Below, piece by piece: positions 2,405 to 23,691 of a stretch of 64,000 bases of DNA. Both the position numbers and the translations under genes were made by a program. The DNA is from Anthoceros angustus (taxonomy: Eukaryota > Plantae > Anthocerotophyta). The notes beneath the pieces were generated by a model. The model had not been told where the DNA came from, ran no database searches, and saw only the letters and a list, made by a program, of their open reading frames with translations. How positions within the stretch are numbered: the stretch's first letter is position 1; each line of letters starts with the position of its first letter. The stretch spans positions 570,369 to 634,368 of the forward strand of contig MU008178.1 of assembly GCA_010909165.1 (NCBI GenBank), read 5' to 3'.

Positions 2405-2545
2405 GATTGATACATATGGCACACACTTATGCGCTTATGAGATTGATACATATGGCGCACACTTGTGTGCTTATGAGATTGTTACATATGGTGCACACTT
2501 GTGCGCTTATGAGATTATTACATATGGCGCACATGTGCGCTTATG
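2405..2545. repeat. 36-bp tandem repeat, ~4 copies
   Basis: Unit GATTGATACATATGGCACACACTTATGCGCTTATGA repeated head-to-tail with a few substitutions. Confidence 0.9.
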
Positions 2546-3319
2546 CTCACAAGGGAACAATACTTCAACATCTAATAGAGTGCAAATGATCCTAGGAATC
2601 CAATGGCTAGTCAAATTTTTTTATTCATCGATTGGACTATTTTAGCCCGCTAAAAGCTAGATTTGGCAAAGTATTATGCTTTTGCAAGATTTTTGATCTG
2701 TTTTAATTTGAACTAATCCACACTAGATTTGGATTGACCCAAAAATTTGCCCAAGTAGTCCGGATATACTTTCACAACATTCAATCCGATTTCAGATTCC
2801 AATAAAAGTCCAAGGCAACTCCAAAGTTTGTGCAAAAAATAGACTTAACTCAAAAGCTAGTGAGAAAAGAGATGGTTCCTAAAGCCCAATCCTTAGTGAT
2901 TCATATAGGGATGGGCAGTGTTGTGAAGTCTGTTTTCAATGCTTCGCCGTTGCCTCACTAATATATGTTTGTGTTGCCTTTAAGCCCGTGCCCTCGCACA
3001 GCCTCGACCATTTGGTGACAGCCCTCACGGTCAGCTGACGTGTCTATCTGATTCCTCCTCAATTGGATTGGTGAGGAGTGTTGTTGATGACAAGTGATGA
3101 GAAATGTCCGATCAAAAAAGTGTAAAAATAGGGTGAAAGGGGCAGCGGGCTGATGAACTACTTACCTACTTAGTTCCATAATAATAATAATAATAATAAT
3201 AAAATCTCGTGCTCGGGTTTCCACGGGCTAAAACTGAACTCTTTTCGCTCTTCCCAAGACCGCTGAACCCACTCTTGCCGTCATTGCGTTGTCAACCTCC
3301 TCCAAACACAAAAAAGAGG

Positions 3320-6300
3320 CTAAAGGTACTCCCATTCAAGCTCTCCTTCCACCGAGGCAGAGTCCTGAACCTTATCCTCCTTGGACTCTGTTTCCTCCAA
3401 TGCCACAGCAGGCTCCGCAGCCGTTTCTGCTCCCTGCAACTTTGTTCCACATTGCAGTTCAGTCTGATCTGTGACCAAGGACTTTGGAACTTCATCACTT
3501 GTCACGGATTGCTCCTTCAGCACATCACCCTCCCCAGCCGTTGACACAACAATATCCGGTTCTCCTGCACATGCAAGTCTGCCTCTAATAAGTGCAGCCC
3601 TCATTAGGATCATGCTCCTCTCCTCGTCTTCTTCAGGTGATATACCTGTATCTCCTCCATTAGCATTTGGACTTCCGCTTCCACCTGACTCCTCACATGA
3701 GGCAGGTGAACTGCTGGCCATAACAAATCCAGGGTATTCTACACACAACCTGAATTCATCATCATCGTCACTGGGACTGATTCCTTCCGTGCTACCAACC
3801 GATTTCCTTATTTGCCTGGCCTTGATAAGGGCTGCCCTGACTTGATTTCTTTGGAATTCTTCTACGCTTTCTACCATTTCTACACAGTGAAACTCAGGAT
3901 TAGTACGTACCTATGTCACTGTATACGGCTGTCACACACTGTTAAGCTAAGAGATTACAATACTTCAAAGAAGGCATTGTCATATGTTTCCTGGAAGTAC
4001 CTGACAATGATCCTTGGCCATTTCTTGATTTCAAAGCTGCCAACTCTAGCTTGACCCGGTCAGCTTCCTGAGCTGCAAGTGCAGCTTCTTCCCGTGCCTC
4101 ATTCAACATAACCCTGTACAAATGCATAGCACCTTTGTTCTCTTCCCTTTCAATATCCAGCTCATCTTGGAGGCTTTCTATCAGCAATTCGGCCTGTCGA
4201 AGCTTTGCAAGCTGTTCTTCGCCTGTGCGAGCCATGAATATTGCACTTTTACGAGCCTGAAAGCTCAACAGATTTATTTCTGCCTCCTTTGCTTCTAGCT
4301 CGCACTCCTTAGCCTCTAAATCGTGCTCCAGATTAATCAGAACGGCATGCCTGTTGGCCTCACAGTTCAAATCTCCTGGTGCCTCATGTGTCTGCTGAAC
4401 TGTATACCCATGTGAGCCCGCTTTCGGTATTTCGTTACATGTCACATTTGGCAGGCTCGTAACAAGTAGTGATGAAGGGACGGTTACCAGAGCCTGGGCT
4501 AAGACACTATCAGAGGTCCCCAAATCCAATTGACTTACCGTTGACCCACTCAGGAGCACAGCTGCCCCTGCGGATTCCAGGTCATCTGTTATGCCTCCTG
4601 TTGCAGCACAGGTCTCTGTAGAGCGCGAGCTTTCAGCCTCCGCAACCTGAGCAGACTTCAAGAGAAATACACAGGTCAGACCACAACTCCATACCACAAG
4701 TATCAGCATCAGCAAACAATCCTAGTTGTGCAGCCAGTCAGCTGTTACCATTTTCAACGGAGAAGACACTGGTGGGCTGTTGTGGGCTCCAAGACCACTA
4801 TATGCACTCTGCCTCACCATCCCGCTGGCTGACAACCTCAGAAGGAAGCACTCAGATATGTTCCGAACTGCATTTTCAAGTGATACTATCTGCTTTTTCA
4901 TCATTGGATTAGCCGAGGTGGACTGACAGGCAAGCAGAGCACTTGAGAGGTTCTCCAAACTATGTGCAAGAGTGCCAAATCCTACAAGGGTATCTTGCTC
5001 CCCTTTAAAGTCTTCTGGGTTGATGGAAGTCGCAGGCAAGCCACCAGAGCTAATGGGAGGAGTGGAAGGAAAGAGGCCGCTACCATCTGCTTTGTCGGTA
5101 CTCAACAGCTTGACAGTCGAAGGGACAGAGACAGTGGAAGAGTCAACATTGGGATTCAATGTCAAAGAGGTGCTTCCATCTGAAGTCTCAGGTAAAGAAG
5201 CCCCTGTTTGATCCCAGGTTGAAGATGCCAATGGAGCTACGGACCGAGATTCAGCTGTCATCCAATGAGAGGGTGCATATGGATCATAGATATATTCATG
5301 CGAAGAAGCTTGCACCGAAGGTTCTTCCTTATCTTCAGCTTGACTGAGTGTTGCTGGCGCCAGTAAGTCACCATTCTCAGTTCCATGAGGAATCTGAAGA
5401 GCAGCAAAGCAAAAGCCCCCTGCTTCTGAGCGACCTTTCCAGACCTTGTCATTCTCATGATGATCTTGTGCGGTGTTATAATCCTGCCATGACTGGGTGC
5501 CTGATTCACTAACGTCAAAACTGAGAGGTGCAGGATACGGCTCTTCACACGCTTGAGACGTGACTGAAATGGACCCAGCAATTCCAATCTCCGGTGTCCT
5601 GGTTTCATTACTTCCCTGTAAGTCCTGTCCGGTTGACCTGGTAAGAGTACTTCGTGGGGTACCACGAAGTATCGTCTTCATACTGGTCCACTGAGGTGGA
5701 ACAGCTACTTTGCGAGAGAAGCTGCTATACTCTGCCTGGAAAGCATTGTTGCCTTGTGACCCTGTAGTCTCATCAGCGCTGCCTAATACTGGATTATACT
5801 CCAGGTACGCTACAGGTGACTCATAGCCCTCCAGACCATGTGTGTACCTCTTGTCAATTGCATCTGCATGTTGTCCGGCTGAAGGATAAGGCAAGCTCGC
5901 TGAGGCATCTTTCGATGGATCATTCTCCACTCTACTTGCCGTACTGCAAGTGACACCTACTTTTGATGACACCTCCTTCGTTGCCTGAGTCAAGAACTTT
6001 TCTTTTCCCTCGGGGGATAAGGATCTTAACTTGTCATCCTTCGCATTCCAACCTTTTTTCTTCAAGCCCACAAAATCCGACCCAGCATCATATTTCTTCA
6101 CTGGCACAGTCCCTGAATCACTACAACCAACAGGCCTTGCTGCTCCATTCACTGCACATGGCGCTGGCTTGTACGGTTCAAAAGCTCTGCCGGAGTATTC
6201 ATGAGATTTTCTCATAAACACTTCAGAAGCAGACACCTCTAAATGAGAATCTTGCGTGCAAAATGGAGAAAACCTGTTGGGAGGCGTATCTGAGACAGTA

Positions 6301-7404
6301 ACTGGTGGTTTTTCTGTTATGTTTCTGTCTGAAGAGCTTGCAAACATCTCCGCAAATACAGATGCTGCCCGCTTCAGAGAGGTGTTCTGATGCTCCTCGC
6401 CCTGTGGAACTGCAGCCCGAAAGCTATCCTGCTTATAAACTGGCTCGGAATGATATTCAGAAGCACCATAAGCGGGGTTCCCTGGATCCATTGGATTACC
6501 ATGTTGCCTTGTCACTGCACACCAGTAGAAGCAGCGGTACGATATAACATACCAACAAGCAGAGAACAAAGCACACAGAAGCACATGGGAACCTAACCTG
6601 AGTGGACCACGTGACTGAAAAGGGACAACAAAATTTAAGACAGCCAGAGGAGAGTACAAGGCACTGACCAAACGAATTTTGACGTCGCCCCTGCTCTTCT
6701 GCACCATCCCATGTTGACTTCCAGCGACGTTCTTCCTGGCTATCATTGCTTCCTACCTCAGCATGAGCAAACTGTGAAGTTCCTCCTGCAGTAGGCTTGG
6801 TAGTCCCAAGTTTCTCAGTATACTCGGGAGAGTTCAGTATCGCACCAGGGAAAGGAGACCAATAAGATGGGTCTGGAGGTGGGATATCCATGGACATAAA
6901 AGCAGATCTGTGGAAAGGTCCCCAGACGTATCCATTCGAAATATCCATGCTGCTTTGTGGTTCACTTCCAGCTGACGACAGTGTCGGATTTGAATAGGAG
7001 GTGGAAAGGAACCGATCAGGCCCATCATGCAAACCAGGGGGTATGAGCCCCGGCAGACCATATAGTTCATTGGAACTGCCTGGAGAGGCCGTGAACAGAG
7101 GTGGTGGAGGATAAGTTTCATTGGAGAAAGCTGGACGTACTGGGAACGGGATCAGAGGGAATGGCAGTGCACTGGAAGGTAGCAGAGTGTCGGCTGAAAT
7201 AGACAAAGGTGGAGATTCCACGGTGCTCGCAAAGCAGGAAAGAGGAGAATTAAGTTGCTGGAGAGAAGAATTTGCAGGCATGGGCAGGTCGGGCGGAGCA
7301 AACGGATCGGTAGCAGGGAAACGGTCGGAACTAGAAGACGGCATCCCAAAAAACGGCGGAAGCGAAGAATAGTAGGAACTTGGTGGTGCACCGGAGGACG
7401 ACAT
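3320..7404 (-). CDS. Uncharacterised ~1238-aa protein: Pro/Ser-rich disordered N-terminal region, coiled-coil, acidic C-terminus; 4 exons
   Basis: Exons 7404-6669, 6514-4749, 4655-4001 and 3879-3320 join through GT-AG introns into one open frame (3717 nt) that links four long ORFs. Heptad-rich segment LEHDLEAKECELEAKEAE...LQDELDIEREE. An alternative start lies at 7497. Confidence 0.75.
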
Positions 7405-8276
7405 CAAGGGTACCCGGTGAGCCCGTGTAGTGCAATGGGACTGATGCTTGTTGTCGCGTCCACCCAACCACGGTTGGTGGGGTCCGTAGGTAGGCATTTA
7501 CGGCAGCCTGGATCTGCGCATCAGAGCACGCGCCCCGAAACCCATATCTGCAAATCAAAACGGAAACGACAGTAAGCGAGGAAATGAAGGGCGGAAGCAC
7601 ACATACGGAGACGCAAGACACAATCTAGCTGAATTGCGGAGCACTTGGCCTTCCAGGAGCCTTCACCGAAACACACTACTTCCGCACCAGCAAACACTGA
7701 AGACCCCAGGAATTACAGCCCAACAAATTGCGTTGCACTAACACGCAAGCTCATGCGATGAGTGTTAAATTGCTGACGGCAACAAATTTTTGCCTCGGAC
7801 ATTTCTCTCCTACCAAATATAGTAGGGGCGGACAAAGAACGAAGCCTACCACAAATGGCACCGGCGAAGAGAATGGAGAAGGCAGCAGCTCCCGCTGCTG
7901 CCTTCTTCGTACAGGAATGGAGGCTGTGGTTTGAAGCGTCACGCCTTCCCGCTTCAGTAAAGGAAACCTTCCCGTATGGACACATGGAAAGGACCCAGAG
8001 CATTGCGGGCCGCAGGAATTAACGTCTGGAAAAAAATTCCAAAAAAACAGAATCCTCCCTCACTGGGGCCCGGGAGTGAGACCTCGACAGCCGTGCGCCA
8101 GAAACCGGAAAACTAAACCCTAAACCCAGGTACCCGGGAAGGGATGGAAGGTTGCAGGACGAACACTGAGATCACACCCCCATCCCATCCAGGGCTGTTC
8201 TAACAAAGTACGTCCTATTAAAACGTGGGGCGTGAAAGTGTGTTCTGGTTCAATTAATTCAGGTTTCCTAAGCAGT

Positions 8277-11534: not shown

Positions 11535-14500
11535 ATGCCAGAGTTACGTGCTGACTCAAGCTTATGCTCTTGGCCTGCTGGTGATGAGCAGACTATGGTT
11601 GGCATGGTATGGCATTGCTTGGCGAGCTGGTCTTGCAAAGATACTGAGTGTTCAATATAATCCGTGCAGGTGGATCGGATGCCTCACCTTTGTAGACTTC
11701 CTGGCCATCATTTCCGGGCTTGTCTTGCTAGTGGCCTGTCAATTGGAGGAGCATTCACTCTGCGCACCAGAAGGTCGGTTCTGTGAATATCCTCGAGTGT
11801 CCAGCATGAAGCCATAGTTGACCTCACTTATCTCAAATACTTGTGAGCAGGAAAGCACCTTTTCCATTGGCTTCAGCGAACATCGACTCAATGCAGGTGT
11901 CAAGTGGTTCTGACTACCCAGTAGAAGCTTTGGCAGGTGGACTGAACGTAGCTGCCCCTCTTCATAATACTGACGGTGCAGCAGGAGCTGCAAAGGACAC
12001 AGCAAACGCTGAGCAAGTCGGCGCGTCCACTTCCAGGTTTTACCAACTTGGAGAAGAATTCTCTTTGAGAATTACTAATCAAGGCTCAGTATGCACAGTT
12101 GCTGAAATCCAGGGTGTTGACCAGGAAAATATGCTTGCTAATGTGTCAAGCAGTTTCAGTGAATTGGGCATTAGGTAGGTATTATTCAGCTAACGCTCAG
12201 AGTGATGTCTTGTTCCCAAGTGTCTCGTTCCTACTTGTATGACTTGTGATGGGTGGCCAGTGTGCAGAGTGCACAGGTATTGACCGAAAATAATCGAATC
12301 TTGGATGTTTTCACTGTTATTCATTCTGAGAGCAAGGCTGCAGTACCAGAGGAATTATGGGACACGGTGAAGGACAGGATTTTCACAAAACTGAAAAGAC
12401 AGGATGATGCCAGCAAGAGTTTGGAAGATCCCATGCTAGCGGAACAGGTACCAGGAGTTCTCAGCCTGTTTTCCGTAAGGACAAATAATGTCTGAGTCTG
12501 CCGTTCAGCTGAAAAATATCGTGCTTAACAGGTTTCATTTCTAACTTCCACCCTCGACAAGGTGGTAAGGGATCAGGGCCACATTGAAGTCCTTGAGGCG
12601 GTGAGTGATGTGTTTCCTTGTATAGCGGGTTTGGTTATCGTGCTGCTGGAAGCATGCATGCTGCTCACAACAATGTTTCAGGTCGATGCCTTGCAAAGGG
12701 GGTTTGAGCAATTGAGAATATGTGAAGACCCGCGCAAGCGAGCAGAGCTCTTGCGATACATTGACAAAATGGATAAGCCCATGGTATGTTTGTTGGGGTC
12801 TCGAATATCTTAGATCACCTTGGCTACCCATAGTCTCCTTCCTGATTGCTATGTTTCTCGATGCGTTTTGTTCTTATTTCTTGTGGATCTCTCTCTGTGG
12901 CCGTTGTGCAGATTACTGCCGTCATCAGGATGTTTTATCTGTACTCTTCTCTTCTGAACGTTGCAGATGAGGCTCACAGCCATCGCCTGAGGAAAGAAAA
13001 GGTTGACTACGCCCTCCCAGCACAACTAGAAGCAGGCCTCCCTTCTTATTATAGCCTCTGCTGCCTGCCAAACAGAAAGATTTCAAGTGTTTTACCAGCC
13101 TGTTCCTGAAGTGCAGGTTTGGGCAAGCACAAGTGCGACCCCCGCATGGTATGCTTCGTTCGATCACACCTTCCGCCTTTTCAAAAAGGCAGATGTGGGC
13201 CCGAAAGAGCTGCAAGCTTTGTTTGACAAGACTGAGGTGCTTCTCCCAGCTGTTGGTGGTTCCAATTGTCCTCTCCATCTGAAGTCTCGTGGTTTGATTG
13301 GGAGGGGGAGTATTGCCATCAACAAATCTAGTCTCTAAATCAAGCAAGTGCTTACTGTGCATGATCACCTGTCAGTACAATCCAGTGTTCACTGCACATC
13401 CAACAGAAGCTAGGAGGCGAGAAATTTTGACATGTCTTCACAGAATTTTCTCAGTCTGCACGGCACGGGAGGTGTGGTATTGCTGCTTTACTTTCTTAAG
13501 CCATGATGCACACAGGGCTGTACTGGGATTATTAAGCGTTATTGTCTTTACAGGATCCAAGGCTTAGCCCAGCGCAGAGAAAAGAACTGGAGGCAGAAGT
13601 TGAGGCTGAGGTTCGTCTTTGCATCTGGCATGTAATAGAGTTTCAATCTAGCATGGTGATGGTGGAGTGTAGAATGCTAAACGGGCTGATGAGCTAATTG
13701 ATCTGCACCAGATTGAACTTCTCTGGAGAACGGATGAGATGCGCACAAAGAAGCCCACCGTGCTGGAGGAGATCCAGACTGGTCTGGATTATTTTCGGTT
13801 TTCTCTGTTTGAGGCAGTTTGTACTACATACAGATATGCGGAAAGCTCACTTCATGTATGTTACAGTGACCTGTTTGGACGGATGTGTCTGTGTTGTATT
13901 CCATTTGAGTTGGATACTTTCAAGATAGTGCCTAAGTGCGTGACATTTAAGTGTGGGCTTGAATTATCTGTTTCACAGCATGTGTATCCGCAAGCTGGTG
14001 TGGTGATCCCAAGCTTTATCAAGTTTGGATCGTGGATTGGTGGTGATCGTGATGGCAACCCTTTTGGTGAGTTGTGAGAACTTTATCTGAATCTGTTCTA
14101 CTGTGAAGCTTAGGGGCTGGTCGTTTGCCAATGCCTTTGCGCTGTGTGTTTGGGAATCAGTTAAGCCGGAGACAACAGTTGTGGCAGCCCTGTTACAGAG
14201 TAGGCTTATACTGGCTGAATACATTAGGCGATGTCGTACTTGTGAGGTACTTTTAGCTACATTGATAAATGAAGCTTTTCACAAGACATGTGTAACCTGC
14301 TCTCTCTACTTAGATACAATCATTGATACTAAGATTTTTTCCTGATACTGTGCGTCTGCAGGAGATTCTAACCCTTTCCCTTCTGATATGCAAAGTCTCT
14401 GATGATTTGCTTAGCAGTCTGGAAGAGGACCAGACTTTGATAGACAAAATCCCAGCTCTCAAGCATGACGCTGCACTGTTTGAGCAGGTAACCTTATTGC

Positions 14501-17500
14501 AGTACTGTGTATGATATGGGTGTGGTCAACAAAGGCTATTGCACCAGAAAGAACACAGAACAGTTTCAAATTATTCCTAGAGTTGATGCCCATTGCATCT
14601 TTGCGTATTTGTTCAGGAGCCATATAGATTAAAGATGCGAGTCATGAGGCACAAACTGGAGCAAAATCTTCGATTAGTAAATGCAGGTCTCCGAGGAAAA
14701 GTGGGCATTGCCGATGAGGTACCCAGAGAAACTCTCCTCAACACATGTTAACTGATTGTCAATTGTCAAGCGTGTTTTTTCTTACTGTCCACAGCATCTG
14801 TCGGTGCAGCTCCTGATTGACATTGAGTACAACATTGATGATATCCCTGGCATTGACCCTCGAGAAGATGCATATGCAAACGAGCAGGAGTTTCTCCATG
14901 ACTTGAAGCTCGTGGATGTGAGTTAACATTATGGATATAAATTACATCTCTGAGATTCATGCATGCTAGCATCTCACAATAACGTCATTGAACTGCAGCG
15001 ATCTTTGAGAAAGCATGGTGATGCTCGCTTGGCTGACAGCAAGCTCAAAGATCTTGTGCGGCTTGCGGAGACATTTGGGTTTTACCTGTGTGCACTGGAC
15101 GTGCGCCAAGAGTCAACTATGCACTCAGAGGTCAGCCCGTAGCTTTTTGAGTTCATAACTTGAAGTCTACCGAGCGTGTATTTCTGTATGTTATTTTGGA
15201 GTTGACGGCATTTCCCAAGTACTTCCATGCACAAGGGTACTCTCAGCACTTTTCCTATCTGAATGTCTTGTTGCTTTGCAGGCCACACATGAGTGCATGA
15301 AATTGCTGGGCCTTGTCGACGACTATGCCTCTCTTACAGAAATGCAAAAGCTGCAAAAGCTGGCTGATGCCCTGTCCTTGCCTCCTCCAGTGGACAAACT
15401 TAAGGTGAGGTATACAATGTGCTTTGTTTGGTGGCTGTGGCACTAGGCGTGGGCTGTGGTCCGACTCTCGAGGTTGTGCACTGCAGGGTATTCTTGAAAA
15501 TATGTCAGAATCAACCCGGCAAGTGGTCGATGTATTCTCTGCTTGTGCTGACATCATGGACATGGTCTCTCTCAAAGCTGTTGCCTCGTACGTCATCTCC
15601 ATGACTAGACATGCATCTCATGTGCTGGAGGTAAGTACCATCTTCTATTGTGTCCTCGATGCCTAGCTTAACAGTAGGTACATGGAGTTAAATATGTTGT
15701 TGCCGTGTGATGCCAGGTCCTATTCCTTGCATGGTTCTCCTGCCGAAATCTGATTGCGAAAGACTCCACTGGCAAGTGGACAGCACGGCTAATAGCAGCA
15801 CCCTTGTTTGAAACAATACCCGATCTTCAGGTATACCATGCTGGAATAGCGTCTGGCTCTACCTTGTCGTAGTGATGTATACTTACCCAATCTTCGTGAT
15901 CACAGCACATGCCTGACGCCCTTTCGGAGCTTCTAAGCAACCAAACCTACAAGGATATATTATATGCTGCGGGTGGTATTCAGGTGACGTGCTGTCAAGA
16001 CGATAGGCACAACTCGATTAACTTTTTGTTTTTCCAATGTAGTGCTTCTGGAGAACCAGGATAGTCTTTAATCTGATATCTTGTACATAATATGCAGGAG
16101 GTGATGCTTGGATACTCAGATTCTTGTAAAGATGGTGGCATAACTGCCAGCGCATTTAACCTCTATAGAGCACAAACAGTTGTCCAGCAGTTGACGAAAG
16201 AAGCTGGTGTGGACGCGCGCATCTTCCATGGACGAGGCGGGACTGTAGGTCGAGGAGCTGGTCCAACTCATGAAAGTGTTTTGGCACAGGTAGGTTTCCT
16301 TCCCTTAGGTAGACTGCTCTACCAGATGAAGCATAGGATTGCTGATAGCAGATGCTAGTCATGTCTGTGGTCTGTGCGCAAATTCAGCCTCCTGGCAGCG
16401 TGAACGGACAAATTAAGTTCACTGAGCAAGGTGAAGTTATCACCTATCGCTATGGGAATGCAGCAACAGCCACCTATGAGCTTACGGTAACCGCATTCGT
16501 CTCATGGAAAATTTGGCTTGGCGTGTGGGCTTCCTTGGTTGTTATCTGCTGCTTAGTGCTTTGACAGTTGATGCAAGTGTATCTGGAGTGGAAGCTTCAA
16601 CCTTGCATCATCTGCAATTCCTTGCAGGTAGGTATAACGGGACTCCTGAAAGCCAGTCATCCCAGTACTCGGGACCAGCAAAGCATCGATCCCAAGGTTT
16701 TTTCTGTGAATGGCTGAAGACCTCTGTTTGGCAGTTACGCAAATCAGCAATGTGCCATAGACGCTCATCTACTTTTCTGCTCTCGTGTAGTATGTTGAAA
16801 TTCTGGAAGAAGTTGCAGCAGAAGCAGAGAAACACTATCGAGAGCTGACAGATGAAACTGAGGGCTTCTACGACTACTTTTACGAAACTACAGTGGTCAG
16901 CGAAATTTCGCTCATGAACATAGGCAGCAGGCCATCTCGTCGGAAAGTTGCAGTTCGCGATAAGTCTTCACTGCGTGCCATTCCTTGGGTCTTTGGCTGG
17001 GCTCAGGTACTTGCTTCTCTTGAACATGCTCGCTTGTGATTGACCTGAACGAATGGCTAACTTTTGACTATCATGTTGGCAGTCCCGGCACACACTTCCA
17101 GCATGGTACGGTGTGGGTTCGGGCATTCGCGCCTTCACGCAGAATAAACCCGAAAGGATTCAACTACTCCAGCGGATGTATATGGATTGGCCTTTTTTCA
17201 GGACATTTCTTTCAAACGTGCAGGTAATTTTACACGGGATGGCAGCATCCCTGCTCCCTGGAAAACCTGGATTGTTCAGGATGATGGCCAACTGGTAGAG
17301 TTATTTCTGTTCTGCAGATGTCATTGTTCAAGGCTTCATTGGAAATTGCGCAGGAATACGCGCGTTTGTGCAGGTAAGTACCTAGTGAGAGCTTTCTCTA
17401 CGCTTCTGCGTCTCCGTTTGGCTGTTGTGTTTTGCAGTTTCTTACTTAAGTGTGTTCAACCTTTCAGAAACCGCATAACTGAGAAACTTGTGTATGATTT

Positions 17501-17947
17501 AGTGGCGCAAGAATTTTCGCTCACAACGGAGCAGGTTGACGCCTTGGTTAATTTTTTTGGTCGATCATTAGTAGCGTCCCTTGCGAACCAAGATGTGAAG
17601 TACCTGAAACTCGGCGCTTGATCACACAGTTCTTAATGGTGTCTCAACAAAACGCGCTGCTTGAAGACAACCCCTTTCTGGAGCGATCGTTTGATACACG
17701 AAGACGCTACTTGGATCCTCTGAACCACATTCAGGTATGCTCTAAGAGGACGTAGCAGGTGGCAAGTATGTGATTCGTTCCTGACCTCAAAGGCGAGAGT
17801 CCCTTCACCTTTATCTCTCCATTGCAGGTTATTCTGTTGGAAAGGAGGAGAGACCCCACAGCGACCCCGGAGCAAACCGAACATTGGGAGAAGCCCCTGC
17901 TACGAACCATCAAGGCCATAGCTAGCAACATGCGTAACACTGGTTAA
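11535..17947 (+). CDS. PPC: Phosphoenolpyruvate carboxylase (RNTG-ending, bacterial-like core) with N-terminal ACT-like domain and possible transit peptide; ~28 introns
   Basis: Spliced exons contain [92 protein letters not shown] and the C-terminus SNMRNTG* (TAA 17945-17947). Upstream exons 11535-11606, 11670-11773, 11851-12174 and 12261-~12447 splice in frame. The start codon is uncertain. Confidence 0.93.
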
Positions 17948-18413
17948 CAGGACCTCCCGGTCTGAGTGTATGTACATAATGCCCATATCTTCACTGTACG
18001 GGATACAAAGAATGCAGGCACCTTCACGGAAGGTCCTCTATGTATGTACCTGGAATGTCAGTATCAAAAGAGTAGATACTGTCTCCTGATATAGATAGAA
18101 AGAGAGAAATAAGGACTCTCGTAAGCAGATTCAGATTATGTAACTTTGGTGGTCACAGGCAGAATAACTCGCACAGTGACGAATGGGGGCAGGGAGGCTT
18201 CTCCCAAGTGTCCGGTAACTTGTAAGTAACAGAGGACTATACAGCCTCGAGTCACTTGGGTATCTGGTATTCCTCCATCTCCTCCTCCTGCTTACTCGCG
18301 GAATACCGATCCCAAGGAAGCATCTGGGAGCGTCGTATCGACTTCATACTTCCTTAAACGTAGCCCGCAGCGTCTTGGCAAACAACTGTGCGGCAGAAGC
18401 AAAGGTTGGTGCG

Positions 18414-20077
18414 ATGGCGACTACCAATCTGCTCTCTGGCGCCGGCGCGATGATGCGAGCTATCGGAGGTTCGCCTTCCTCTTTCAAGGATCTTTGTCAC
18501 AGCCGTAAGCTGCTCACGGAGGGCACTGGTTTCTGCTGCATGAGCATCGGCACTCGTGCGTTGGCCGATAGGCATCAACCAGGTCCTGGCGCGCCGTTTG
18601 CCTGGCTACGAGGAGGAAGTTCCCGCCATAAGCGAAGCGCACCCCTGCCAGAGGCTGCTGCTGCAGTTTCGGAATACGCTGCCGAGGTGGATGTGCGTGA
18701 GTTCTCCAATCTTACCTCGGCTACGGACCGGAATTGTTTCCAGTGCGCAGGAATTTTGAACTTATACCTGGCATGCATTGTTTGAGACAATGTCCGCCTT
18801 TTCCGGAGCGGAACGGAATCAGCTCAGCAATGCATGTCTGGCCTTTGCCACAGGAATTCCTGTTTTGGTGTCTGTCCAGATAATTCTCTGGTGGTAAGGC
18901 GGCAGTGGTCTGAGAATGCGCAGTCGTTGTGTTCATGTTTTGGTCTGCTAGCTCTGGCTCGGCACTGAATCTTTTGAGCTCAACTTAAGGACTGTATGAG
19001 ATTGCATGCCTTAGATATAGCCCAGGGTTATGACAGGGAAGCAGAATGCCACTAGCATCTATTCGCATGTTCTTCTCCAGAGAAACGTACAAATGATCCT
19101 TTAGATTACTGTTGATACCGAGCCAGACTCAGCCTTTCAGCTTTTATTTCTGTTCTAGCTTCCAGTTTAGGTTGATGTCATCTTTACGAAAATTTCTCCC
19201 AACTAAGTGTCGCTCGTGACAATGTGCAGCTGATGAAACAGTCGTCAAGGAGGCAGTTTCAACAGAGCACGCACCTGCAGCTCTAGGACCATATTCCCAA
19301 GCAATCAAAGCCAACAACTTGCTATTCGTGTCAGGAGTTCTTGGTCTCAATCCAGCGGTGAGATCTTCCACTATATAGAGCAAGCATTTGTAGGTTTCTG
19401 TCCAACGAGTGGAGTCTTCTGAAAGTAAGACGAGGGATGCATTTGGAGTCACCATTGATACTGGACATGAGACGCATGGGTTTTTGGACTGTGCAGACGG
19501 GGAAGTTCGCTGCAGAGTCCATCGAGGGGCAAACTGAGCAGGTTGTGAAGCTGTCTTTTAACTGTTGGTTTACTTTCCAAGCCACCATGGATAAACTAGG
19601 GCAAAAAAATCACCATTCCCACAGTTGTTGCCCACTCTGAGCTCCTGCCTTGTTTCAGGTTCTGAAGAATATGGGAGAAATCCTGAAAGCTGGTGGTGCA
19701 AGCTATTCTTCAGTCGTCAAAACAACTATCATGTAGGCCCACCTAACCCCCTGACTCCTTGACACATGTAGATAGCTGGCAGGAACAGAATCGCTGTGAA
19801 CAGGCATCTCACCTCAGGTTCTGGCAGGTTGGCTGATCTTGCCGACTTCAAGGCAGTGAATGAAATCTACTCTAAATGTAAGCCTTGCCTCAAACTTGGA
19901 TACCTCATATTTGCCACATTAGCTTGCCTGGAAACTAATGCTTGACTGCCGGTGGATGCAGACTTCCCAGGACCAGCACCGGCACGGTCCACTTATCAGG
20001 TGGCTGCATTGCCTTTAAACGCCCGAATAGAAATCGAGTGTATTGCGGCGCTTTCCTCCTCCACTGGTAATCTCTAA
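18414..20077 (+). CDS. RIDA: RidA reactive-intermediate deaminase (YjgF/YER057c/UK114 family) with organellar transit peptide; multi-exon
   Basis: Exons give APAALGPYSQAIKANNLLFVSGVLG, VVKTTIMLADLADFKAVNEIYSKYF and PARSTYQVAALPLNARIEIECIA. The N-terminus is Ala/Ser/Arg-rich. Confidence 0.92.
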
Positions 20078-21099
20078 CTGGTAGGAGCCAACTGGTGAGA
20101 ACTCTGTCCGATTGCTGGGACGTGTGAACTGTAGACTGGAGTTACATTGCTTGCAACCTGCAACACACCAAAGGCTGCACTGTGTGATACGAAGATGAAG
20201 AAGCTCTTTGTCTGCCCGGCGACAGGATAGGAATCGGAAGACCTATTAAAAGAATACGCTAGAGCGAAATGCCGTAGGCATACAATTTTGGGATCTGTCA
20301 GTTCTGTTAGTACAGGTCGGTTGTTGGCAAACCCTAATAAAAGAAGTGGTCTCGTGAGCTACTGCTGTGCCAAGTGTCATCCTCATCCAGCCAACTTCCA
20401 AGTTCCGACTTGCGCATTCCTTCCGCTAGTGGACAGCGGCGCGATTTCGAGGGTAGAGAGAGAGCGAGAGCGAGGTCGGATTATTCAAGACGTATATCGG
20501 AGATGGGGCCGGTGACGGTGTCAGGGCACAGGGACACCCTTCTCTCGCATCGTGAACCTGGAGCTGTATGCCAAAACCAACCTCACGTTGGGTCTCATGA
20601 CCTAGTGACTACTGTCTTTGTCGTCCTCCTCTCGAATTTCTGGTGGCTGCAGCATAGCATGGAGAAGCAACGGGAATGAGGCTGAAGAATGCTCCAAAAC
20701 TGGCGGAGGTTCTGCACCAGGATGACCAGCAATCTTGTGATGGTGCTGTTAACAGGGTCGTCGAGAACACGAGAAAGACGTTAGATAATCCTAGTGATAC
20801 TAGTTGTATAGAGAGCTTGCCAATTTTGACAAACAGTAGAGACGAGAAAATGTCTTCCCTTTTCTTTTTTTTTCCTTTTAATCAGCAGGATGGCCCGGGT
20901 TCAGTTTAGATCGGAGTGGGTTCTACGGAATCTGTTTTCGGGGGCTGCTCTTGTGGTACTTCTGTTCGTTCCGAATGTGGAGGCTGAAAATGCGACGTGC
21001 GAAGGTGAAAGGTGACGTTGTGCACCATACTTTGAGACTTGAGTTGGCTGCTATCATTTGGGGCCACATGTGTGATATAATGTAATCGTTTTGCTGCAC

Positions 21100-21845
<746 letters not shown>

Positions 21846-21967
21846 TTCGTCTTGTGTGGTACTACCCACTTGTGTTTGTGAATAAAGTGATGAGCTTGTG
21901 GGCAGAAAATGTGCGTCTGTACCCCCATGGATCGTCATCACACACGGAGACGGGCATTGATGTGCAG

Positions 21968-22553
21968 GAACGCGTACGAGACGTGGAGAAACGAGTGCGC
22001 GGAGCTGGGGCCGGAGCTCCTGGAGCACATGCTGCCGGGGCTGGAGCTGGGGATCGACACGAAGGAGGTGCTGGAGGTGTTCGGGCCGGGCCACATGAAC
22101 GTGTCGGTGAAGCTCAACCGATATCCGCCGTGCCCCGAGCCGGAGAAGGTGATCGGGCTGTACTCGCACCGGGACCCGCAGATTCTCACCATCCTGTACC
22201 AGGATCAGACCGGGGGGCTCCAGGTGATGAATAAGGGAGAGTACGTCCCCATGAGCCCCGACCCAGTGGGCTCCCTGGTGGTGAACATTGGATCTCCTCT
22301 GCAGGCCTGGACCAACGACCGCTTCAGCAGCGTCTTCCACCACGCCGTGGCCAGCAGCGAGAGGACGCGCTTCTCCGTGGCCTGCCTCCTGGGCACGTTC
22401 CTGGACACCGTGCTGCACCCCTGGCCCATCCCGCAGCTGGTGGACCAGGAGCACCCGCAGAAGTACCGCGCCATGGCCTTGCGCGAGGTCCTCACCGCCT
22501 TCGCCAAGCATAGCCGGCAGCCCACCTTCACCCAGGGCGACCGCTCCGCCTGA
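21968..22553 (+). pseudogene. 2-oxoglutarate/Fe(II) dioxygenase (DOXC-type), C-terminal exon only
   Basis: LNRYPPCPEP, HRD (HxD), GGLQV, a distal His (FHHAV) and RFS (RxS) are present, preceded by a TGCAG acceptor. No DIOX_N exon is visible upstream, where the ABP1 relic lies instead. NIGD is changed to NIGS. Confidence 0.75.
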
Positions 22554-22758
22554 CATGTCATCGACCGCTTTCGCCTCTGAGCAGCGCAACGCCATGATTC
22601 AGTCTGCACAAGATGGATACTGCAAATTTGAGGTCGACATAGCTGGCTTGTACAATGCACCCTTCAATCATTTTGTAGAGGCAATGCCTTGCAGTTTGAA
22701 GGTGTGTGCTGGTTTTGTGTTGCCATGTCCATACTGTACTGGACATGCAAGTGACGCT

Positions 22759-23691
22759 TGCTGCAGGCTGCATTTCTTCTTACAAAAAACTGTTGTTCAC
22801 AATCGGAGAGCCGAAACGATGACACTTCCAAGACAGATGATTCACATTGATATCAACTGGTGACGATCACCATACTGCAGCTGCCTGGTACAATGAATCA
22901 AGGAAATGCGGGAGAAAAACCAAGCAAGTCTAGCCTAATTGCACCATGATCCAGGCCTGCAGCTACTTGCAAGGTCCACAATTGCTTGAACCCAATCCAA
23001 ACCTTTCCCAATCCATCCAGAGTATTGAACAAGCCGTCTAGAGGTGGACGAAGGAACTGCGCAGGTAGTCGACGGTCTCGTTGGTGACGCCCAAGTACTG
23101 GGCAATGGTGGCGTCGTCGATGGGGACGGGGGAGGCGGCCAGCAGGGCCTGAGCCACAATCTGCACCCGGGGTTCTGGCTGTTGAGGGTGGCGAAGGCGG
23201 TGGCGTTGCCGGGGCCCACGTTCTGCTGCAGGCTGCATTTCTTCTTACAAAACTGTTGTTCACAATCGGAGAGCCGAAACGATGACACTTCCAAGACAGA
23301 TGATTCACATTGATATCAACTGGTGACGATCACCATACTGCAGCTGCCTGGTACAATGAATCAAGGAAATGCGGAGAAAAACCAAGCAAGTCTAGCCTAA
23401 TTGCACCATGATCCAGGCCTGCAGCTACTTGCAAGGTCCACAATTGCTTGAACCCAATCCAAACCTTTCCCAATCCATCCAGAGTATTGAACAAGCCGTC
23501 TAGAGGTGGACGAAGGAACTGCGCAGGTAGTCGACGGTCTCGTTGGTGACGCCCAAGTACTGGGCAATGGTGGCGTCGTCGATGGGGACGGGGGAGGCGG
23601 CCAGCAGGGCCTGAGCCACAATCTGCACTCCGGGGTTCTGGCTGTTGAGGGTGGCGAAGGCGGTGGCGTTGCCGGGGCCCACGTTCTGCTG
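22759..23691. repeat. ~465-bp tandem duplication carrying the germin 3' coding end and downstream sequence
   Basis: 22759-23223 matches 23224-23691, with TGCTG microhomology at the junction. The differences are mostly homopolymer-length indels. Confidence 0.9.

Follow-up and report, generated by a model that had tools for sequence, protein, structure and literature searches.

The window analysed here is a stretch of 64,000 nucleotides from Anthoceros angustus (Anthocerotophyta; contig MU008178.1, positions 570,369 to 634,368), and its DNA is eukaryotic and intron-rich. On the plus strand, between 11.68 and 17.95 kb, it contains a gene for a phosphoenolpyruvate carboxylase (PEPC) that very likely carries an ACT-like domain fused in frame to the N-terminal end of its catalytic core. 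Such a fusion had been proposed in a first-pass annotation of the sequence, and the gene model that follows from a closer analysis is given in Table 1. Exons 2 and 3, which carry the domain, are referred to as exon A and exon B. The ACT-like part of exon A begins at about 12056 and comprises strand b0 (FSLRI), strand b1 (CTVAEIQG), the b1-a1 loop (VDQENML), and helix a1, while exon B, which starts at GGCCAG/TGT and ends at CAG/GTACCA in phase 0, provides strand b2 (SVQSAQVLT), strand b3 (RILDVFTVI), and helix a2. The codon split between the two exons, AG plus T, encodes the Ser of GI-S-VQSAQ.

Table 1. Exons and introns of the gene for the ACT-like domain-bearing PEPC in the window (a slash marks a splice junction).
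Feature	Coordinates	Strand	Description
Putative exon 1	11679-11773	+	ATG, then a 31-codon basic, hydroxyl-rich putative presequence; ends AAG/GTCGGT, phase 2
Exon 2 (exon A)	11851-12174	+	Acidic/Ala-rich linker and first half of the ACT-like domain; ends TAG/GTAGGT
Intron	12175-12260	+	86 nt, GT..AG, phase 2; divides the ACT-like domain between a1 and b2
Exon 3 (exon B)	12261-12447	+	Second half of the ACT-like domain, basic linker, and start of PEPcase (..PMLAEQ)
Intron	12448-12531	+	84 nt, GT..AG, phase 0
Exon 4	12532-12600	+	First helix of the PEPC core; begins after AG
Remaining 21 PEPC exons	12682-17947	+	End ...NMRNTG; stop codon TAA at 17945-17947; placed by tblastn colinearity and the guided exon table

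In the guided exon table, which runs from the ACT-like part to the stop codon, the gene consists of 24 exons, all bounded by GT..AG, with 1,022 codons and no internal stops, and the joined product is 66% identical to its orthologue in Marchantia paleacea. When the first four exons are joined, frame bookkeeping gives 225 codons and no stops. The queries of all database searches were single exons or database orthologues, and the joined exons were used only for codons, stops, junctions, and identity. The peptide quoted in the first-pass annotation is reproduced exactly by the translations of 11891-12172 and 12262-12456, and its intron at 12175-12260 and in-frame run into the PEPC core, whose next exon begins at 12532, agree with the splice sites and frames. 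The span assigned there to the feature, 12059-12447, needs one correction, as the coding exon for the first half of the domain opens well upstream (open frame from 11822, likely acceptor 11850/11851).

The connection between the ACT-like domain and the PEPC core can be followed in other plants. A search with the 62 residues of exon B against a representative library of 1.84 billion proteins returned 14 matches, 13 of them short genomic open reading frame (ORF) fragments; the moss fragments among such genomic ORFs start at the position of the intron 12175-12260. The fourteenth match was P0010, a protein of 1,180 residues from the moss Ceratodon purpureus, aligned at residues 171-231. In P0010 the Pfam PEPcase match (897 bits, model positions 1-919) extends from residue 229 through to the C-terminus, and residues 130-1180 are colinear with the window in tblastn. 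Because this match opens four residues short of where exon B ends, a single exon holds the latter half of the ACT-like domain together with the start of PEPC. The domain was also cast as a hidden Markov model (HMM) from 18 orthologues alone, leaving out the window rows. Run with --max on all 1,935 six-frame ORF pieces that the window yields, this model matched two of them, exon A (model positions 4-44, E 1.1e-7) and exon B (45-88, E 1.6e-14). The two matches meet at the intron, and every other piece gave E > 6, so that a chance resemblance is very unlikely.

Transcript and genomic sequences of relatives show the same arrangement. The Physcomitrium-type protein is found as an identical, uninterrupted ORF of 1,202 residues on contigs of about 4.2 kb in 193 sequencing runs, and since two dozen introns interrupt the gene in the genome these contigs must be spliced mRNA. 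P0019 is a complete Trinity ORF with the same layout. In L005, a genomic contig of 3.7 kb from a closer relative (Logan, SRR33208241), the same four exons recur at 2520-3510, with their order and intron positions conserved. The Spirogloea protein P0017 (SM000126S26288) contains an insertion of 28 residues (about 152-179) exactly at the GI/SVQSA junction, most likely an intron retained at the conserved position; in the paralogue P0018 the first half of this domain is missing. With colinear full-length orthologues and moss mRNA contigs in hand, the in-frame fusion of the first-pass annotation holds up, and it is very likely that the ACT-like domain is genuinely part of the PEPC.

The catalytic portion of the gene matches Pfam PEPcase (PF00311) in single window exons with E-values of 1e-5 to 1e-31. 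Equivalents of E. coli H138, R396, R581, R587, R699, R713, K773, R832, and N881, which we take to be catalytic and aspartate-site positions, are all kept, and judging from these aligned residues the catalytic core is intact and the aspartate-type inhibitor site is retained. The C-terminus reads RNTG, not the QNTG of plant-type PEPC, and the N-terminus consists of a putative presequence and the ACT-like domain in place of the plant-type phospho-serine region. Full-length orthologues of 1,076-1,215 residues share this layout. They include the liverworts Marchantia paleacea, Riccia, and Calypogeia, the mosses Ceratodon (two genes), Physcomitrium, and Sphagnum, the lycophyte Diphasiastrum, the Zygnematophyceae Spirogloea and Mesotaenium, the early-branching streptophyte algae Chlorokybus and Mesostigma, and the prasinophyte Pterosperma. 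Several transcriptome and metagenome entries add to these, and the architecture is present in more than 15 taxa. The search for ACT and PEPcase domains on one chain that the first-pass annotation had suggested thus finds many database orthologues, some of them with automatic PF01842 and PF00311 matches. Members of this group are called ACT-PEPCs below, and the window gene is an ordinary member of this conserved class.

The nearest relatives of the liverwort orthologue that lack the ACT domain are PEPCs of sulfur-oxidising Gammaproteobacteria, such as Thiohalomonadaceae, Sulfurivermis, Ectothiorhodospira, and Thioalkalivibrio, with 930-950 residues, 45-50% core identity, and about 900 bits. Solved plant-type and E. 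coli PEPCs score 358-373 bits against P0010 and align only from its residue ~221-303 on; in this comparison with solved structures, no solved PEPC covers the ACT part. A quick tree search was made with 21 ACT-PEPCs, 20 gammaproteobacterial enzymes, and that of E. coli, a set without plant-type or AtPPC4-type sequences. The ACT-PEPCs formed one clade in this set (SH-aLRT, an approximate likelihood ratio test, 100), with the gammaproteobacterial PEPCs as sister. Branching within the clade is near to the species tree: Mesostigma groups with Chlorokybus, the Zygnematophyceae stand together, and liverworts, mosses, and the lycophyte follow. The clade and its species-like branching therefore fit a single old fusion that was inherited vertically. 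The 120 top-scoring relatives of the liverwort protein include no seed-plant PEPC among those that are named, many of the 120 being unnamed.

The assignment of the domain to the ACT family is based on sequence patterns, family models, and a predicted fold. The GlnD/ACR-type pattern recognised in the first-pass annotation is present as x-D-N-x6-T-V-V, the loop, L-L, and D-V-F-x-V, and the models ACT_ACR9_3rd and ACR10_N match the family. Several orthologues pass the Pfam ACT cut-off of 27 bits (PF01842), namely Mesostigma (39.4 bits), Mesotaenium (32.1), P0037 (28.0), and M. paleacea (27.1). ACT_ACR9_3rd passes in Diphasiastrum, P0037, P0038, and P0039, and the plant bHLH ACT-like Pfam model passes in Chlorokybus, P0037, P0038, and P0040; orthologues reach 29.6 and 33 bits with PF24931 and 31-37 bits with PF22754. 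A profile of the family searched against the PDB matched the ACT domains of Rel/RelA (1.4e-6 and 1.4e-5).

The fold was modelled with AlphaFold2 on residues 137-263 of the liverwort orthologue P0020, using an alignment of 20 rows. The model, with a predicted local distance difference test score (pLDDT) of 77.7 and a predicted template modelling score (pTM) of 0.60, has the order b0-b1-a1-b2-b3-a2, with a long a2 running into the first PEPC helix. Its top Foldseek match is the ACT-like domain of GL3 (9c7n, E 7.8e-5, TM 0.70 by target), followed by maize R and then by the ACT domains of 3-phosphoglycerate dehydrogenase, SerB, ThrA, and RelA. VIA-align gave Z of 9.4-9.7 (root-mean-square deviation 3.0-3.4 over 79-88 residues) to the ACT-like domains of GL3/R and large glutamate dehydrogenase, and Z of 8.0-8.7 to the ACT domains of aspartokinase. 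These comparisons support an ACT-like fold, with variation, for the modelled domain, which is the outcome that the first-pass annotation had anticipated for a fold prediction.

The loop between b1 and a1 departs from the classical form in the window protein, the translation giving V-D-Q-E-N-M-L, and the reading DQENML in place of DRPGLL is thus correct. The members of the family differ at this site. Mesostigma and five members grouping with Pterosperma have [DN]-[RK]-x-G-L-L (e.g., DKPGLL or NRPGLL), the classical Gly form; the Pro-Gly pair is kept in Mesostigma and one chlorophyte-like member, and the others read RQG, RAG, RKG, or RVG, with Gly retained. Chlorokybus, the Zygnematophyceae, and the land plants mostly have D-Q-x-[NG]-L-L, such as DQENLL, DQDNLL, or DQANLL. 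In bryophytes the loop is D-Q-[ED]-N-L-L, Diphasiastrum and Mesotaenium retain Gly, and P0019 reads HQEDLL. Because this form is mostly shared by Chlorokybus, Zygnematophyceae, and land plants, the aligned loops indicate that the change is old and conserved, and not the decay of this single gene.

A pairing of the domain was also predicted. Two copies of P0020 residues 139-236 gave an interface score of 0.40 as a homodimer, compared with 0.02 for the best control. In a microbial benchmark, 21 of 30 solved same-chain pairs and none of 23 solved single chains scored as high, and in a eukaryotic one 17 of 29 pairs and none of 30 single chains did so. Contact agreement between the dimer runs is 93% or higher, with a partner pLDDT of 84 or more. 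The predicted contacts involve helix a1 (165-176) and strand b2 (182-189), including E165 and N166 of the DQEN loop. The prediction supports the side-by-side dimer usual for ACT modules, formed here by the ACT-like domain, with the loop at the interface.

Upstream of the ACT-like domain, orthologues have 47-154 residues. The first 60 residues of most orthologues contain 10-18 Ser/Thr and 0-4 acidic residues and are rich in Arg/Lys, a composition by which the presequence resembles an organellar targeting sequence, probably a plastid one. Exon A is open from 11822 on, and the first Met of its frame, at 11891, aligns to Val in L005, whose exon A is free of ATG in this frame; for these two reasons the start codon must lie upstream of exon A. 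Putative exon 1 (11679-11773) joins in frame to the conserved acceptor 11850/11851, and in L005 an analogous ORF beginning with ATG ends at AG/GTAAGC, in the same phase, before that acceptor. With exon 1 included, the predicted protein would have about 1,135 residues, 100 of them before the ACT-like domain. When orthologue N-termini were compared by relaxed tblastn with the window at 8-12.2 kb, nothing credible came back, as expected for presequences.

Other features were observed in the window around this gene. Directly downstream, at 18400-20100 (+), is an intron-split gene of the RidA/YjgF type, in which two exons match Pfam Ribonuc_L-PSP (E 1.4e-7 and 8e-4; exons at, e.g., 19220-19375 and 19641-19733). 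A Ser/Ala-rich open frame at 18219-18782, upstream of these exons, could be a presequence. A long open exon at 21894-22550 (+) encodes a 2-oxoglutarate (2OG)-Fe(II) oxygenase (PF03171, E 1.6e-27). It is followed at 22755-23645 (+), within a GC-rich stretch, by a direct repeat of period ~462 nt, in which open frames of 45 residues and of 31-35 residues recur at 22950/23412 and at 22755-22946/23304-23408. On the minus strand, 4722-7497 holds two overlapping Ser/Pro-rich open frames of 674 and 333 residues, the longer without a Pfam match, which probably form one intron-containing gene for a low-complexity protein.

ACT-PEPCs can be compared with several known systems. The bacterial-type PEPCs (BTPC; AtPPC4, RcPPC4) are likewise encoded by nuclear, intron-rich plant genes and end in RNTG, and, as in BTPC, no plant-type phospho-serine domain can be made out in the translations of the N-terminal window exons, although no motif search was made for it. 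We know of no ACT domain in BTPC. A further difference is that gammaproteobacterial enzymes directly follow the ACT-PEPCs among the 120 best relatives, the tree containing no BTPC sequence. The gammaproteobacterial PEPCs have the closest cores but, at 930-950 residues, lack the N-terminal extension, the ACT domain, and the introns. The fusion of an ACT module to a catalytic core recalls SerA of E. coli, aspartate kinases, and aromatic amino acid hydroxylases, to which the model aligns with Z 7.3-8.7. The predicted dimer, formed through a1 and b2 and having the b1-a1 loop in its interface, also resembles these enzymes, but here the partner is PEPC, the domain is N-terminal, and the loop Gly has been lost in land-plant members. 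Plant ACR proteins (ACR9, ACR10, ACR11) and the ACT domains of GlnD share the sequence pattern and the Pfam models; the ACRs differ in being stand-alone repeat proteins without a catalytic domain, whereas ACT-PEPC has one copy per chain. The ACT-like domains of GL3 and maize R (9c7n, 9c7o) are the best structural matches, at 13-18% identity, and are C-terminal in transcription factors. The rice chloroplast PEPC Osppc4 of Masumoto et al. 2010 reportedly has an organellar presequence and is said to be tied to ammonium assimilation. It would resemble the window protein in its N-terminal organellar presequence, putative in the latter, but it is of plant type and is not known to carry an ACT domain.

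From these observations a working model of the enzyme can be proposed. It is rather probable that the gene encodes a PEPC of about 1,135 residues, made up of a presequence, an acidic linker, the ACT-like domain, and a helical linker into the core, that acts as a regulated oligomer. A regulatory role for the ACT-like domain is likely, and regulation specifically by ligand binding is a possibility to which we give slightly less than an even chance. The ACT-like domains of two PEPC subunits would pair through helix a1 and strand b2, placing their b1-a1 loops (DQEN here) at the interface, where they could form a pocket for a small effector. Either a small metabolite at this interface, such as an amino acid or an organic acid, or else pairing as such would set the signal or the oligomeric state. 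The a2-linker helix would then relay the signal to the N-terminal side of the core, which is also the end at which plant-type PEPCs bear their regulatory phospho-serine, and the activity of the enzyme or its sensitivity to inhibitors would be tuned. Amino acids are common ACT effectors, and since a rice plastid PEPC is reportedly tied to ammonium assimilation, a link to nitrogen status would be a reasonable idea by analogy.

Several points weigh against this model. The canonical loop Gly is Asn in the window protein, so that its loop is not of the Gly-containing form, and the best structural neighbours include ACT-like domains without a known ligand; any sensed ligand is hypothetical. The P0020 model lacks the textbook C-terminal strand b4 and has an extra predicted N-terminal strand, b0 ('FSLRI.N'). 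Fold and dimer were modelled on the liverwort orthologue, which is 58% and 48% identical to the two window exons, and the dimer score may reflect memory of the prediction model, given that ACT dimers have already been solved. The splice model of the locus is drawn from genomic sequence, and within it exon 1 and the putative organelle targeting are derived from composition and a comparison of two species. Pfam searches of exon A and exon B singly gave no ACT match, a result that is uninformative because each exon carries half a domain.

Other explanations of the locus differ in how well they account for these data. The domain might be a ligand-free pairing module that sets only the oligomeric state of PEPC, in the manner of the bHLH ACT-like domains of GL3 and R, which are known only for a role in dimerisation. 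The rank of GL3 and maize R at the top of the Foldseek and VIA matches points this way, as do the bHLH-TF_ACT-like model being the best Pfam match in several members, the replacement of the loop Pro-Gly by Glu-Asn in the window plant and bryophytes, and the predicted homodimer itself. Ligand-binding ACT domains are also dimeric, however, with their site at the same interface; D-Q-[ED]-[NG]-L-L is strongly conserved from Zygnematophyceae to land plants, which suggests a retained job, and the earlier-branching members keep the classical loop. We consider a pure pairing module the main alternative, unlikely but to be taken seriously.

It is much less probable that the copy at this locus goes unexpressed or is decaying, with the functional ACT-PEPC elsewhere in the genome: all 24 of the 24 guided exons are open and bounded by GT..AG, their 1,022 codons contain no internal stop and keep 66% identity to Marchantia paleacea, and every catalytic and allosteric residue checked is retained. 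Least credible of all, with hardly any probability left to it, is the view that there is no fusion, the pair of 5' exons being part of another gene upstream or resembling ACT by chance. The absence of a Pfam ACT match in the single window exons could be cited in its favour, yet exon B itself includes the start of PEPcase, the moss mRNA ORFs are uninterrupted, more than 15 taxa share the architecture, and the family HMM matches only the two window pieces. A separate upstream gene or a chance resemblance was accordingly rejected, being refuted as far as sequence evidence reaches.

Full-text searches of the literature found no description of a PEPC with an ACT domain. As far as can be seen, the architecture is recorded in databases, under names such as 'hypothetical protein' or 'phosphoenolpyruvate carboxylase', but is apparently undescribed. 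Plant PEPCs were treated as two clades in the Isoetes genome paper, in which a 'bacterial-type' PEPC is recruited for crassulacean acid metabolism (CAM) in Isoetes (PMC8566536). A survey from 2022 used CDD labels to divide PEPC genes into plant-type PEPC (PTPC), BTPC (PRK00009), and 70 'other PEPcase superfamily' genes, and the last group, which includes entries from Spirogloea, Marchantia, Physcomitrella, and Anthoceros, was set aside (PMC8784020). One of the sequence tables of Peng et al. 2012 (PMC3521007) lists a Physcomitrella entry, A9SLH0, that might be this gene. ACT-PEPC genes may therefore have been lumped in such surveys with BTPC or with the 'other PEPcase superfamily' (PMC8566536, PMC8784020).

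The widest interpretation is put forward as a tentative one that we hold to be improbable as a whole. ACT-PEPCs might constitute a third, ancient class of PEPC in the green lineage, organelle-targeted, in which an ACT dimer binds Gln, Glu, or Asp so that plastid anaplerosis tracks nitrogen; this class would predate the split of chlorophytes and streptophytes and would have been kept in algae, bryophytes, and lycophytes. If such a third class exists, it would bring a new logic to the regulation of a much-studied plant carbon enzyme, and surveys that sort the PEPCs of non-seed plants into 'plant-type' and 'bacterial-type' may need to be read again. It would also bear on the balance of carbon and nitrogen in early land plants, and orthologues are at hand in Marchantia and Physcomitrium, two plants with good genetics.

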